NCBI GenBank assembly: GCA_002269645.1
Contig: NIVC01000121.1
Coordinates: forward strand, 62,001 to 126,000
From: Macrostomum lignano
Taxonomy: Eukaryota
Reading direction: 5' to 3'
Length of the DNA stretch: 64,000 nucleotides
A model generated the notes under the pieces. It had not been told where the DNA came from. It saw only the letters and a program-made list of their open reading frames with translations, and made no database searches. A program made the position numbers and the translations under genes. Shown piece after piece: positions 22,279 to 62,898 of the stretch; positions within the stretch are counted from its first letter, which is position 1; every line of letters starts with the position of its first letter.

Positions 22279-23318
22279 ATGGTGTCTGCAGCAGCTTTGA
22301 ATTTGGAAGCCGCCGCACCATTTGCGGTATGGCGCAGGCTGTCTCTTATCTTCATCCTGGCGGCTGTGCTGTGCTGCGCTGTACAGCAGTCATTCGCTTC
22401 GGATGGTGAGCCAGTTCTGGGTCAAGGATTTCATTGCTTTTCTCCTAGACACTATACTATGATGGTCTCCTCTGGGCATTGACTGGTTATATGTTTACAT
22501 GTACCCTTATTATCAACAGTGCAATATCTGTGTTTAGCACTCTCCTAGTTTATTATCATACTTTTGTGTTACCTAATTCTCTCAATTTTAAATTAAATTA
22601 CCCATCTGATCAGTCTCTCACTTGTATTAATTGATTAATTATCTTAATTATATTTAAAACCGTGTCTCGCACCTGCATGTAATGGTCAATTACCTTTATA
22701 GCCGTGTATTACACCTGTATCTAATTTTTAATTACCTTTATACGAGCTAGCCGTTTCTCGCACCTGTATTAATTGAATAATTACCTTAATTACTTTTATA
22801 GCCGCTTCTCGCACCTTTATCAATTGGTTAATTATGTCTTAATTATCTTTATAGCCGCGCCTCACACCTGTATCAAATAGTTGTATGTATTCATACTTAT
22901 TCATACTTGAAGGTTACTTACTATACTACTGAGTATTAAATTACGTCTTGAAGCCGTGCGTGACACCTGTTCTTGTGACTAACTATCTTAATTATCCTGT
23001 CCACTACCTAAACAGCCATTCCTCACCTTGGAAAATCAATTCTAAATGTGGTGGGCCAATGCAGCTACAGGTGCATATGTAGGCAGCAAGTGGCCTGAGG
23101 AAAAAGGAAACAGTTGTCAGTTTCTACGCTGGGCGGCTATCCCGCAGGCTACATGGGAGCCAGCATGGATGAACTTTTGGGCGAAGCGGTCGAGCCTAAG
23201 CCGGACAAGGGGAAGGCGAAGGCGAAGGCCCCTGCTGCAGCTGCTTTCGTCTCCGCTAAAGCCTCCGCTCCCGCCGCGGCACCTGCGCCCGTACCTCCAT
23301 CCTCCGGCCGAACTTCGA
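22279..23318 (+). CDS. Exons 1-2 of the giant gene: signal peptide and Ala/Pro/Lys low-complexity linker
   Basis: [42 protein letters not shown] (basic pair, hydrophobic core, small-residue cleavage site) with donor G|GTGAG. Exon 2 reads [42 protein letters not shown]...; its donor (A|GTTAG) is weaker. Confidence 0.7.
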
Positions 23319-62300: not shown

Positions 62301-62898
62301 TCACATGACTCATGATCCTATGGCTAATGATCCTATGACTCATGATCCTATGACCTATTATCCTATGACTCATGATCACATGACTCATGATCCTATGGCT
62401 AATGATCCTATGACTCATGATCACATGACTCATGATCCTATGACCTATTATCCTATGACTCATGATCACATGACTCATGATCCTATGACCCATTATCCTA
62501 TGACTCATGATCACATGACCCAATATTCTATGACCCATAACGGTATGACCCATGACTCATGATCACATGACCCATTATTCTATGACCCATAACGGTGTGA
62601 CCCATGACCCATGATTCTATGACCCATAACGGTTTGACCCATGATCGCATGACCCAGTGATGCAAATTCTCCATCGCAAACGCCTCTCAAACCCGAACAC
62701 CTGCAGCCATGAAATGCGACAAGGACAAAGTGTACACCACCAAGATGCAGCCCTGCCCAAAGTCCTGCGAGAATTTGTTCTTCGGCACCAAGGCCAACTG
62801 CTACAACCTGCCCAAGAGGGAGGGCTGCGCGTGTAAGAAGGGCCTCGTTCTAGATGGCAGGAAGTGCGTCAGGCCCGAAATGTGTCAGTGCGTCAAGA
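22279..62898 (+). CDS. Giant secreted Lys/Arg/Cys-rich modular protein with VWD-C8-TIL (gel-forming mucin-like or adhesive-like). At least 38 exons, ~2080 aa in the window, 3-prime end outside the window
   Basis: Exons: 22279-22405, 23121-23318, 24040-24198, 24405-24548, 26122-26373, 26455-26577, 27654-27785, 27863-27985, 28066-28197, 28533-28661, 28745-28876, 29579-29701, 29785-29910, 30327-30449, 31263-31517, 32299-32430, 33776-33901, 34183-34332, 35522-35653, 35748-35879, 36542-36844, 37748-37870, 37954-38082, 39885-40010, 40095-40226, 45596-45721, 46360-46490 (1 nt short), 51650-51919, 53870-53995, 54893-55147, 55832-55963, 56052-56174, 56959-57087, 57180-57320, 57409-57650, 60285-60604, 61479-61774, 62707-62898. 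All have AG/GT boundaries and compatible phases except exon 27. Confidence 0.88.
22560..22970. repeat. Degenerate AT-rich tandem repeat (CGCACCTGTATTAATTG...TTATAGCCG)
   Basis: Recurring motifs with indels. Confidence 0.6.
23510..24000. repeat. 31-bp G-rich minisatellite (GGGGAGGGGCAGCAGGCACTGAAGGATCTGA)
   Basis: Direct tandem copies. Confidence 0.93.
24040..57320 (+). CDS. Exons 3-34: array of 37 alternating basic Cys modules (A: C-P-K-x6-C...C; B: C...C-x3-G-x-R...C-x-C...C)
   Basis: Examples: A = [40 protein letters not shown]; B = [43 protein letters not shown]. Exons are 123-150 nt for single modules and 252-303 nt for double modules, all phase 1-1. Confidence 0.88.
24670..26114. repeat. 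(AATC)n microsatellite
   Basis: Direct; ends a few nt before the exon 5 acceptor. Confidence 0.97.
26600..27545. repeat. Purine-rich 29-35 bp minisatellite (GGGAGTGATGTGGGTGCAGAATAGGGATA)
   Basis: Direct tandem copies. Confidence 0.92.
28240..28450. repeat. Short G-rich tandem repeat (GGGGTGGGTGTTAAATGGGGCATGGAGT)
   Basis: About 7 copies. Confidence 0.85.
30000..30230. repeat. 21-bp minisatellite (GGAAACCAATGGGAACTAAAT)
   Basis: Direct tandem copies. Confidence 0.9.
30490..31230. repeat. 24-bp minisatellite (GTCACCTGAGTCACCCAATTCAGT)
   Basis: Direct tandem copies. Confidence 0.95.
31545..32215. repeat. CT-rich polypyrimidine tract
   Basis: Low-complexity (CTCTCC)n. Confidence 0.93.
32530..33660. 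repeat. 31/32-bp minisatellite (TTTGATGTGCCGCCACCTTCGCTTCCTTCTC)
   Basis: Direct tandem copies. Confidence 0.95.
33970..34120. repeat. Short tandem repeat (GGGGACAGCTGACC...(ACTCT)n)
   Basis: About 3-4 degenerate copies. Confidence 0.7.
34400..35400. repeat. Dimeric ~22+22-bp minisatellite (CTTAGCAACAGTGTTGTGTCTC / CTTAGCAACAGTCTGATTTTCT)
   Basis: Direct tandem copies. Confidence 0.93.
35910..36450. repeat. 18-bp minisatellite (GGGAGATTTATGAAATAT)
   Basis: Direct tandem copies. Confidence 0.93.
36850..37690. repeat. ~40-bp G-rich minisatellite (GGGGTGGCGGGCTATCAGACCCCCGTGGGGTTGAAAGTGGT)
   Basis: Direct tandem copies starting at the exon 21 donor. Confidence 0.95.
38125..39850. repeat. 16-bp minisatellite (AATCTCACACCTGAAC)
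   Basis: Direct tandem copies. Confidence 0.97.
40260..42780. repeat. 10/20-bp minisatellite (TCTCTAGTCA / TCTCTAAGCA / TATCTAAGCA)
   Basis: Direct tandem copies. Confidence 0.97.
43256..43400 (+). mobile_element. Possible second SINE-family fragment with a tRNA-like head
   Basis: B box GGTTCGAATC at 43316-43325, A-box-like CAGCTTAGCAGTAG, and the motif GCCGCTGTACACTC (43375-43388) shared with the SINE at 54291/57682. Confidence 0.45.
43400..45430. repeat. 23-bp minisatellite (TAATTAGGCTATGATACCCTGTC)
   Basis: Direct tandem copies. Confidence 0.97.
45890..46240. repeat. Degenerate 20-bp repeat (AAAAGTACATATTTCAGTCT)
   Basis: Direct tandem copies with mismatches. Confidence 0.85.
46710..48705. 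repeat. Highly homogeneous 30-bp minisatellite (CTGGAATCTCACCCTCTCTGATTGGAG(G/A)AT), ~66 copies
   Basis: Two copies per 60-nt line. Confidence 0.98.
48807..50478 (-). CDS. Nested antisense gene in intron 27 of the giant gene: type-I single-pass membrane protein. Exon 50478-49928 and probable exon 49161-48807 (~301 aa; 184 aa if unspliced)
   Basis: Signal peptide [19 protein letters not shown], 6-Cys ectodomain, Ser/Thr stalk, [28 protein letters not shown], basic stop-transfer [14 protein letters not shown]. Donor GA|GTGAGT at 49927 is phase-compatible with acceptor CCTAG|A at 49162 and an open second exon. Confidence 0.72.
49188..49900. repeat. ~34-bp minisatellite with hairpin GACCC-AGGT-GGGTC in the intron of the nested gene
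   Basis: Direct tandem copies. Confidence 0.93.
50830..51585. repeat. 21-bp minisatellite (ACTACTATTAGATGTACCTGA)
   Basis: Direct tandem copies. Confidence 0.95.
52090..53760. repeat. 12-bp minisatellite (GGGATTCATTTT)
   Basis: Direct tandem copies. Confidence 0.97.
54090..54785. repeat. 28-bp minisatellite (CAGTTGCTGGGCGACTCTCTCAGATGCT) interrupted by a SINE
   Basis: Direct tandem copies on both sides of the SINE. Confidence 0.93.
54291..54652 (-). mobile_element. tRNA-derived SINE, full-length copy
   Basis: Minus-strand head GGGGCCGTAGCCCAGCGG with A box TAGCCCAGCGG (54633-54643) and B-box-like GGCTCGATTCC (54590-54600). A-rich tail, 13-bp TSD CAGATGCTCAGTT (54278-54290 and 54653-54665). 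A second copy lies at 57682. Confidence 0.8.
55150..55780. repeat. ~28-bp minisatellite (CAGTTGCTGGGCCAGCCTCCCAGATCCT), related to the 54090 array
   Basis: Direct tandem copies. Confidence 0.92.
56230..56900. repeat. 22-bp minisatellite (AGATATCGTCACAGATCTCAGT)
   Basis: Direct tandem copies. Confidence 0.95.
57409..60604 (+). CDS. Exons 35-36: von Willebrand factor type D (VWD) domain
   Basis: [29 protein letters not shown] ... [13 protein letters not shown] are the hallmark GDPH..FDG..F.G.C.Y.L and GLCGN motifs. Confidence 0.95.
57682..57982 (+). mobile_element. Same SINE family, copy with an internally deleted head
   Basis: Inverse match to 54291-54652 (GGCTCGATTCCAAGTG ... GTGTACATGCCTAACGA ... 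GGGCCGCTGTACACTCCTGTGTGAG ... TAAAGTGCGCCAGGG) with an A-rich tail. Confidence 0.8.
58010..60100. repeat. GA-rich 9-bp-based repeat (GGAGAGACA)n splitting the VWD domain
   Basis: Direct low-complexity array. Confidence 0.96.
60610..61441. repeat. (GTCT)n microsatellite
   Basis: Direct; begins at the exon 36 donor. Confidence 0.98.
61479..61774 (+). CDS. Exon 37: C8 domain
   Basis: [20 protein letters not shown]...DCRNDACV...[16 protein letters not shown]...WRTKTFC matches the typical C8 pattern C..L....GPF..C...C..D.C...C....Y/LA..C...W R...C. Confidence 0.9.
61845..62660. repeat. 15-bp-based degenerate repeat (TCCTATGATACATTA / CATGATCCTATGACC)
   Basis: Direct tandem copies. Confidence 0.9.
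62707..62898 (+). CDS. Exon 38: TIL (trypsin-inhibitor-like Cys-rich) domain
   Basis: [22 protein letters not shown]...[29 protein letters not shown] has the TIL Cys pattern (CP.SC, EGC.C..G.VL.G..CV....C). Confidence 0.92.

Follow-up and report, generated by a model that had tools for sequence, protein, structure and literature searches.

Which protein is encoded by the small exons that lie among repeats between positions 22279 and 62898 of the stretch studied here, and what might it do for the animal? The stretch, called the window below, comprises 64,000 nucleotides (nt) of the flatworm Macrostomum lignano (assembly GCA_002269645.1, contig NIVC01000121.1, positions 62,001 to 126,000). A first-pass annotation of this DNA had read the locus as a giant polycationic, disulfide-stapled secreted protein and as a candidate glue, cement or gel protein. 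We are now nearly certain of the identity and architecture of the gene. It is BOX15_Mlig022069 (copy g1), which has 40 exons, the first 38 of them in the window, and its product has about 2,190 amino acids (aa). The best explanation overall, to which we give a probability of roughly 0.6, is that this product is secreted and serves as a polycationic scaffold, cross-linked by disulfides, to which polyanions bind.

The gene, its repeat array and its C-terminal domains

The exon model was built from AG/GT-bounded segments of phase 1-1, which were enumerated and then chained. It consists of 38 exons on the + strand (22279-62898), all 38 with an AG acceptor and a GT donor, and the 32 module exons among them are all phase 1-1. 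Once spliced, the model contains no in-frame stops and gives a product of 2075 aa with 12.8% K, 12.6% R and 8.6% C. The order of parts proposed in the first-pass annotation, namely a signal-like N-terminus, a linker, an array of about 1600 aa and VWD-C8-TIL, was thus rebuilt independently. The model did not arise by chance, since it shows 97.7-100% identity to deposited proteins and all of its exons are colinear in a paralogous locus.

The gene sequence itself is not new. The first-pass annotation could not match it to a named gene, and it is in fact already present in GenBank as the hypothetical proteins BOX15_Mlig022069g1, g2 and g3 and in UniProt as several fragmentary M. lignano entries, which were retrieved with the D assembly as query, all uncharacterised and with no functional name. 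The g3 protein (PAA78532.1, 2136 aa) covers residues 1-42 and 109-2075 of our model with 97.7% identity, the g2 protein (PAA78542.1, 1806 aa) covers residues 397-2075 with 98.7%, and the g1 protein (PAA90218.1, 489 aa) is 100% identical over residues 1707-2075. The locus that encodes g1 is 100% identical to window 47263-64000, and the window copy is therefore g1. In the paralogous g3 locus (L002) the 38 exons are found in the same order, with identities of 96.6-100%. Over 2037 codons, the window copy and g3 differ by 27 synonymous and 11 non-synonymous codons, and the rough ratio of non-synonymous to synonymous rates (dN/dS) of about 0.13 indicates purifying selection between the two copies. 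Literature searches for the Mlig022069 locus tags and accession numbers found no mention of them.

Exon 1 (22279..22405, + strand, ending in phase 1 at the donor GTGAGC) provides the start codon and a signal-peptide-like N-terminus (MVSAAAL...SFASD). The same N-terminus is found in PAA78532.1, with N8K as the sole change, and in the UniProt entry A0A1I8IK09, with Q37E as the sole change. Over 11 residues, the Kyte-Doolittle mean of its hydrophobic core is about 3; QQSFA-SD follows, and from this core we infer a predicted signal peptide. Exon 2 (23148..23318, +) encodes an optional Ala/Pro/Lys-rich linker (...SSGRTS) and has the weak donor GTTAGA; its acceptor at 23148 is used in the UniProt models, and an in-frame alternative lies at 23121. 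The linker is included in A0A1I8IK09 and A0A1I8IWZ4, PAA78532.1 splices exon 1 straight to exon 3, and the linker sequence is 98% conserved at the g3 locus. Exon 2 may be alternatively spliced.

The centre of the protein is the module array at residues 123-1722 (1600 aa). It contains 454 K+R (28%) and 118 D+E, which corresponds to a net charge of +336 and an isoelectric point (pI) of about 10.3, as well as 152 Cys (9.5%). S+T amount to 13.8% and there are two N-glycosylation sequons, so that a Ser/Thr-rich mucin core is indeed missing, as had been claimed. The same holds for the charge given earlier for the exon 6 module, in which we also count 13 K/R and 2 acidic residues, over 40 aa.

The array is composed of 18 full units of about 85 aa and a final half-unit A (18.5 copies), and the half-units A and B alternate strictly. 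Half A has about 41 aa and three Cys (CPK-x7-C-x18-C), and half B about 43 aa and five Cys (C-x10-C-x17-CxC-x10-C). The units are mutually 23-37% identical, with six of the eight Cys positions invariant and the other two at least 90% conserved; across the units of three paralogues, P0006 and P0007 among them, all eight Cys are invariant at 15-37% identity. The two halves are homologous to each other (hhalign probability 82%, E 1e-5). The exon boundaries are placed in the one codon that separates the flanking Cys of neighbouring halves, and fused exons combine A+B in three cases and B+A in two. A hidden Markov model (HMM) of the unit recognized 18 full units in register on the spliced model, with 50-74 bits each and 9.5 bits for the divergent unit 11. 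In a six-frame scan of the window, the same HMM placed modules on the + strand only, at 24081-57310.

Pfam matched no family in the array modules. As queries for AlphaFold, and for the exhaustive search described below, we used fused single-exon units and pieces of P0006 and P0007. For the fused B+A exon 30 (window 54895-55146, 17-row alignment), AlphaFold returned a mean predicted local distance difference test score (pLDDT) of 96 and a predicted template modelling score of 0.67. This model is all-beta with five long strands (17-28, 31-42, 49-55, 58-69 and 72-82), in which the unit is predicted to fold as long beta hairpins. An earlier model, of the atypical A+B exon 5, was confident for half B only. 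Foldseek found nothing significant in the PDB with either model, the best E values being 0.55 (IL-17F, first model) and 0.25, and a profile search of PDB sequences with the unit gave spurious WD40 matches only. The Cys framework, invariant at 15-37% identity, and the pLDDT of 96 together support the view that the basic region consists of folded modules in an array and is not low complexity, as the first-pass annotation had predicted.

Two known Cys-rich domains were considered for the unit. UniProt automatically labels the fragment A0A1I8HBY8 as 'CTCK domain-containing', which we treated as a lead only. The label is compatible with the CxC motif and the long hairpins, but CxGxC is absent and no cystine-knot model of Pfam matches, and therefore the unit was not filed as CTCK. 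VWC repeats have 10 Cys with the motifs CxxCxC and CCxxC; the units have 8 Cys without those motifs, and Pfam VWC did not match the two multi-unit stretches at E<=10.

A single D assembly (VWD-C8-TIL) is located near the C-terminus, and the D1-D2-D'D3 series was not found. It is adjoined by exon 34 (57180..57320, +, donor GTCAGT), which encodes the last A-type half-unit with a fourth Cys; a similar module also sits just before VWD in the relatives P0002 and P0013. In the whole 2075-aa model Pfam returned VWD only (E 1.2e-27), and C8 (E 5.4e-9) and TIL (E 7.7e-6) were recognized only in a separate scan of the C-terminal 171 aa. Sub-regions were likewise needed for the relatives, for which Pfam on whole proteins returned nothing. 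The first part of VWD is encoded by exon 35 (57409..57650, +) and has a GDPH motif at its start (57409-57440). Some GDPH-bearing VWD domains, those of MUC2 (D4), MUC5AC and FCGBP, self-cleave at the Asp-Pro bond at acidic pH. The motif is kept in the relatives P0013 and P0003, reads GDPY in P0002 and is absent in the paralogues P0006 and P0007. Exon 36 (60285..60604, +) encodes the second part of VWD. The usual motif of this region is GLCGNFNG or GLCGNYNG; here it is GLCGNCNG, which creates a CxxC (CGNC), and the same variant occurs in P0002 and P0013.

C8 is encoded by exon 37 (61479..61774, +), whose acceptor is backed by the 100% identity to PAA90218.1, and TIL by exon 38 (62707..62898, +). 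As exon 38 ends in phase 1 at the donor GTGAGT, the gene extends beyond TIL. The earlier description of a protein ending in VWD-C8-TIL was an effect of the window edge, because in all three deposited proteins (g1-g3) TIL is followed by 120 further residues, consisting of KFPELM, two six-Cys ShK-type domains, a tail and the stop. The first ShK-type domain is recognized by Pfam (ShK, E 3.1e-8), the tail has 35 aa, and there is no CTCK domain at the C-terminus. A ShK exon was sought in 62899-64000 and none was found; the window stops within intron 38, and exons 39 and 40 lie 3.6-5.1 kb past the TIL exon region. At window-equivalent positions, exon 39 corresponds to 66482-66631 (L001 19220-19369; ShK-1) and exon 40 to 67843-68054 (L001 20581-20792; ShK-2, tail and stop), both outside the window.

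Relatives in flatworms and comparison with known systems

Relatives of the repeat were collected with an exhaustive HMMER search, in which the unit profile was run against 1.84 billion cluster representatives with a cut-off of E<=1e-3. It matched 90 representatives, 21 of them at E<=1e-30, with up to 48 matched stretches per protein. The Cys spacing used for family membership (C-x8-C-x18-C-x12-C-x10-C-x17-CxC-x10-C) was found in register in Mlig022069. Species were looked up for 30 of the 90 representatives; nine of these 30 (from Logan, JGI and MetaClust) have no species name, and every species-named match among the 30 is from a flatworm. Besides several further M. lignano loci, cestodes are represented by Echinococcus granulosus (W6UV63, 5275 aa, labelled 'Collagen alpha-3(VI) chain'), Sparganum and Dibothriocephalus, trematodes by Echinostoma, Paragonimus, Dicrocoelium, Trichobilharzia and Calicophoron, and monogeneans by Cichlidogyrus and Protopolystoma.

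M. lignano itself has at least six distinct paralogous loci, and its family members include BOX15_Mlig016097, Mlig019034, Mlig008915 and Mlig022224. A word-indexed search retrieved BOX15_Mlig016097g3 (2723 aa), which has a signal peptide, VWD-C8-TIL, two ShK domains and an array of about 2300 aa, and BOX15_Mlig019034g1 (1875 aa), which has a VWA domain in addition. In the relatives, Pfam on sub-regions recognized VWD-C8-TIL-ShK near the N-terminus, VWA and a C-terminal PAN domain; reading by eye, the PAN region is flanked by six-Cys ShK-like motifs. The two paralogues and the E. granulosus protein share with Mlig022069 the same repeat in register (8-48 units), the same VWD-C8-TIL-ShK block and a secreted-looking character. 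The order of the parts differs: in the paralogues the array is placed behind an N-terminal D assembly, whereas in Mlig022069 it stands in front of the D assembly and the chain stops shortly behind the ShK-type domains. Unlike Mlig022069, several relatives have VWA and PAN domains as well. Judged from these sequences, the 8-Cys repeat appears to be a flatworm-restricted domain family that has apparently not been described so far.

M. lignano also has Mlig-ap1 (MH586844), the cohesive protein of the temporary adhesive, which is giant, secreted and extremely K/R-rich and has one VWD-C8-TIL (PMC6410801). Cys is absent from its K/R regions, which are 'GRK' low complexity; the core of ap1 contains a C-type lectin domain, VWD-C8-TIL and 17 EGF domains (PMC6410801, PMC8621496). 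Species, giant size, K/R richness and a single VWD-C8-TIL block are common to both proteins, and to this extent the comparison with Mlig-ap1 made in the first-pass annotation stands. It is, however, an analogy only. The basic region of Mlig022069 is a Cys-repeat array, VWD is preceded by half-unit A and not by a C-lectin, and TIL is followed by ShK-type and not EGF domains. Mlig022069 is thus set apart from ap1 by the described architecture of the latter, and no ap1-sized protein was present among the repeat-family matches. Nor was ap1 itself among the homologues that the searches retrieved.

Mlig-ap2 (MH586845), from the same species, also has VWD, C8 and TIL. Unlike Mlig022069, it has 46 large glycosylated central repeats and TSP-1 domains at its end. 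We rejected identity with ap2, since its N-terminus differs (MKLLTAVVAAQ...) and the D assemblies are just 26% identical. In a later paper from the group that published PMC6410801, ap1 and ap2 figure as the major constituents of the glue that is secreted (PMC8621496). Attachment of M. lignano is blocked by heparin and other negatively charged sugars, and release is blocked by added cations or basic peptides (PMC6410801). In the proseriate and Theama proteins, ap1 consists of lectin, EGF and VWD-C8-TIL domains and ap3 of Cys-free GRK(HS) low complexity; the portions of these descriptions available to us contain the 8-Cys module in neither protein. From Mlig022069 we predicted 11 tryptic peptides, and none of the 11 occurs in the accessible part of the pull-down, footprint and tail mass-spectrometry tables (2019, PMC6410801). 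The high-pI VWA proteins in that part of the tables were also considered and are not members of the 8-Cys repeat family (PMC6410801).

Outside the flatworms, gel-forming mucins and VWF are likewise large, secreted and disulfide-rich proteins with VWD-C8-TIL, and the GDPH motif is shared with MUC2 and FCGBP. Mlig022069 differs from them in having a single D assembly, no Pro/Thr/Ser-rich O-glycan core and no C-terminal cystine knot, and its net charge is positive whereas theirs is negative. In KCP and CV-2, Cys-rich repeats form an array between a signal peptide and a C-terminal VWD region. This order of parts in kielin/KCP and crossveinless-2/BMPER is the same as in Mlig022069. Their repeats are, however, VWC domains with 10 Cys, whereas the units of Mlig022069 match neither VWC nor CTCK models and are far more basic. 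A folded polycationic array beside a D assembly appears not to have been described so far.

Candidate functions of the protein

How could such a protein act? We propose, tentatively and with somewhat less than even confidence, that self-association through the D assembly is combined with the binding and condensation of polyanions by the array. The protein would enter the secretory pathway, where disulfides within and between modules would give the array the form of an extended chain, resistant to proteases and with a net charge of about +336. The single D assembly might mediate disulfide-linked self-association, by analogy with VWF, mucins and zonadhesin-type proteins, and the GDPH site may undergo an acid-triggered Asp-Pro cleavage that yields a reactive C-terminal Asp. 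Outside the cell, judging from its charge, the polycationic chain would bind polyanions such as acidic glycans, the glycocalyx or biofilm-coated surfaces and form a cohesive matrix. In a more far-reaching version, the unit would be a new flatworm-restricted extracellular fold, and the polycationic versions of Macrostomum would be an unrecognised class of scaffold that condenses acidic glycans into glue, cement or a protective matrix, with GDPH as a covalent anchoring step; in this full form we regard the proposal as speculative and unlikely.

Several observations weigh against a polyanion-binding scaffold. The species-named parasite proteins contain 13-19% K+R and 8-13% D+E and are not polycationic, so that binding based on charge would be at most a specialisation of Macrostomum. 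As P0006 and P0007 are without GDPH, cleavage is not a property of the whole family, and the self-association of the D assembly is extrapolated from other protein families. Literature searches for tissue expression returned nothing specific to Mlig022069. Exon 1, and with it the putative signal peptide, is linked to the modules through annotation models and frame compatibility. Moreover, exon 27 of the window copy is without one G near 46389 (CGC-GTCC in the window and CGCGGTCC in the paralogous locus), and this single-G deletion shifts the frame into a stop if the acceptor of the other copies (exon start 46360) is used. With an alternative acceptor at 46380, the frame is kept and the first Cys of the half-unit is lost. 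The missing G may be due to a mistake of the assembly within a GG run, or g1 may truly carry the lesion.

Macrostomum paralogues and some unnamed relatives contain 21-32% K+R and little acid, and from the spread of the family together with its composition we conclude that the fold is ancient in flatworms and the extreme positive charge a lineage-specific elaboration. Alternatively, the product could be a protein of the extracellular matrix or of body-wide mucus that flatworms in general inherited from their common ancestor, with the charge in Macrostomum being secondary and of no special role. Such a role would fit the conservation of the repeat and of the VWD-C8-TIL-ShK, VWA and PAN architecture from Macrostomorpha to Neodermata, as well as the number of paralogous loci in M. 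lignano. We nevertheless think it unlikely, as the high charge is common to several Macrostomum paralogues and unnamed relatives and is maintained by purifying selection between two copies, a sign that the charge is of importance. A component of the duo-gland temporary adhesive, or of a cement-gland or egg-attachment glue, acting as a cohesive polycation alongside Mlig-ap1 and ap2, is the role suggested by the strong basicity, reminiscent of the K/R regions of ap1, by the VWD-C8-TIL block present in ap1 and ap2, and by the part that charge plays in attachment and release (PMC6410801). We do not favour this role and consider it improbable: the major components of the secreted glue are already described as ap1 and ap2 (PMC8621496), the absence of the predicted peptides from the covered part of the tables adds weak evidence, and the repeat family also occurs in cestodes, trematodes and monogeneans. 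The K/R regions described for ap1 and ap3 of M. lignano, Minona and Theama are, in the accessible parts of those descriptions, Cys-free and of low complexity, unlike the modules. To our knowledge, the parasitic flatworms that have repeat relatives lack duo-gland adhesive organs. A part in rhabdite secretions, which the first-pass annotation had also named, is as speculative as one in glue or cement.

The remaining explanations concern the fate of the chain, a different class of protein and the state of the window copy. Dibasic motifs are abundant along the array, the units are cationic and Cys-rich, and the two C-terminal ShK-type domains would fit a toxin theme, so that one might think of a precursor cut by convertases into dozens of small cationic, disulfide-stabilised peptides of antimicrobial or toxin-like nature. 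This is hardly compatible with the joining of the halves by a single residue between flanking Cys (C-x-C), which leaves no spacer peptide, or with the 3 and 5 Cys of halves A and B, which would require cross-half disulfides or an obligate 8-Cys unit. In addition, B+A is modelled as one confident structure and the VWD, VWA and PAN context is that of structural proteins, and we therefore give the precursor very little credence. Least probable of all seems a modulator of BMP-type growth factors resembling kielin/KCP or crossveinless-2. It is brought to mind by the parallel order of signal peptide, about 18 Cys-rich repeats and VWD-C8-TIL, and by the automatic CTCK label on one fragment; but the missing VWC and cystine-knot matches at E<=10, and the lack of the CxGxC ring motif speak against it, and the size, charge and many paralogues of the protein are unlike those of signalling modulators. 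Finally, the window copy (g1) could be a recently inactivated duplicate, with g2 or g3 as the working gene. The frameshift and stop in exon 27 would be expected in such a duplicate, as would the annotation of just a 489-aa 3' fragment at the g1 locus in GenBank. We consider this quite unlikely, since a single base in a GG run is a typical consensus error of long-read assemblies, the remaining 6.2 kb of coding sequence are intact, the ratio of non-synonymous to synonymous differences to g3 is low and an in-frame acceptor is available at 46380. Of all these readings, we prefer the secreted, polyanion-binding scaffold, polycationic and cross-linked by disulfides.

Exon layout, repeats and implications

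The array exons, all on the + strand, begin with exon 3 (24040..24198), in which a short Ser/Gly lead-in precedes half-unit A of unit 1, and exon 4 (24405..24548), which holds its half-unit B. Exon 5 (26122..26373) is the fused A+B exon of unit 2 that served as query of the first AlphaFold model, and exon 6 (26455..26577) is the strongly basic half-unit A mentioned above. Exons 7-9 (B 27654-27785, A 27863-27985, B 28066-28197) are separated by introns of 77-80 nt. They are followed by exons 10-11 (A 28533-28661, B 28745-28876 with donor GTACGT), 12-13 (A 29579-29701, B 29785-29910), 14-16 (A 30327-30449, fused B+A 31263-31517, B 32299-32430), 17-18 (A 33776-33901, B 34183-34332) and 19-20 (A 35522-35653, B 35748-35879). 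Exon 21 (36542..36844), a fused and divergent A+B with insertions, encodes unit 11, which has the lowest HMM score among the units. Exons 22-23 (A 37748-37870, B 37954-38082) and 24-25 (A 39885-40010, B 40095-40226) come next. Unit 14 is split into exon 26 (half-unit A, 45596..45721), preceded by a 5.4-kb intron that is made up chiefly of minisatellites, and exon 27 (half-unit B, 46360..46490), whose start at 46360 follows the acceptor of the paralogous copies. The array is continued by exon 28 (51650..51919, fused A+B, unit 15), exons 29-31 (A 53870-53995, fused B+A 54893-55147, B 55832-55963) and exons 32-33 (A 56052-56174, B 56959-57087).

Between these exons the locus is rich in tandem repeats. 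The 75 rows reported by Tandem Repeats Finder can be merged to give about 40 distinct arrays; these take up about 58% of the window, and within the gene span the share is 63%. A minisatellite of at least 100 nt is present in 24 of the 37 introns; these arrays are all mutually different, with units of 4-50 nt and lengths of up to 2.5 kb. The other 13 introns are short (77-94 nt) and repeat-free, and about half of them lie at A-to-B junctions. The gene spans 39.5 kb in the g3 copy and 45.8 kb in the window copy, and the minisatellite arrays probably differ in length between the two. Since most exons have about 40 codons and fall under the 60-aa limit of the open reading frame (ORF) listing, a six-frame view misses almost all of the gene, as had been noted before.

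The annotation of the locus is affected in several places. In the GenBank record only the last seven exons are annotated (489 aa, from window 57263). A called product of 535 aa on the - strand (window 46711-48703) sits on a 30-bp minisatellite with 66 copies and 98% matches, and this gene call is almost certainly spurious. Within the 5.2-kb intron 27, window 48797-50700 is a non-repetitive stretch with several Cys-containing open segments. Pieces of it are included in the UniProt entries A0A1I8JP74 (several segments) and A0A1I8F5N1 (as N-terminus). The unit HMM has no match in 48797-50700, and the g2 and g3 proteins of GenBank omit that stretch; the segments in the UniProt models are probably mis-predicted exons.

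Upstream of the gene, window 1-22000 consists mostly of minisatellites, including a 21-mer in 108 copies at 7059-9328 and a 22-mer in 66 copies at 3903-5361, and the long ORFs listed in these 22 kb are translations of repeats. Outside the repeats lies an ORF at 14041-14877 (+ strand, ATG start, 278 codons), the product of which is acidic, rich in Asp, Glu, Ser and Asn, and contains a poly-Asp stretch as well as a Gln/His run. It gave no Pfam matches and has no gene product on record; it could belong to a neighbouring locus, as a gene or as one exon. On the other side, the next called gene is found outside the window, about 7 kb downstream of the gene on the - strand (L001 26203-29521), and encodes 539 aa with MATH/TRAF-type domains.

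With only the last seven exons annotated and a spurious gene placed on a minisatellite, the locus suggests that genes whose 40-codon exons lie amid repeats are systematically under-annotated. For the study of biomaterials, a folded, disulfide-stapled polycation would be a design different from the disordered GRK regions of the known flatworm cohesive proteins. Mlig022069 is less singular than the first-pass annotation had supposed, and its main value is as a lead for the definition of a domain. If our reading of the repeat is correct, it is a phylum-restricted extracellular module outside Pfam and with no relative in the PDB, which makes it worth a family definition and an experimental structure. 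In free-living and parasitic flatworms alike, proteins made from the repeat reach 48 units and exceed 5,000 residues. Its flatworm-only relatives in Echinococcus, flukes and monogeneans may also be of interest to parasitology, as uncharacterised secreted or matrix proteins of these parasites.

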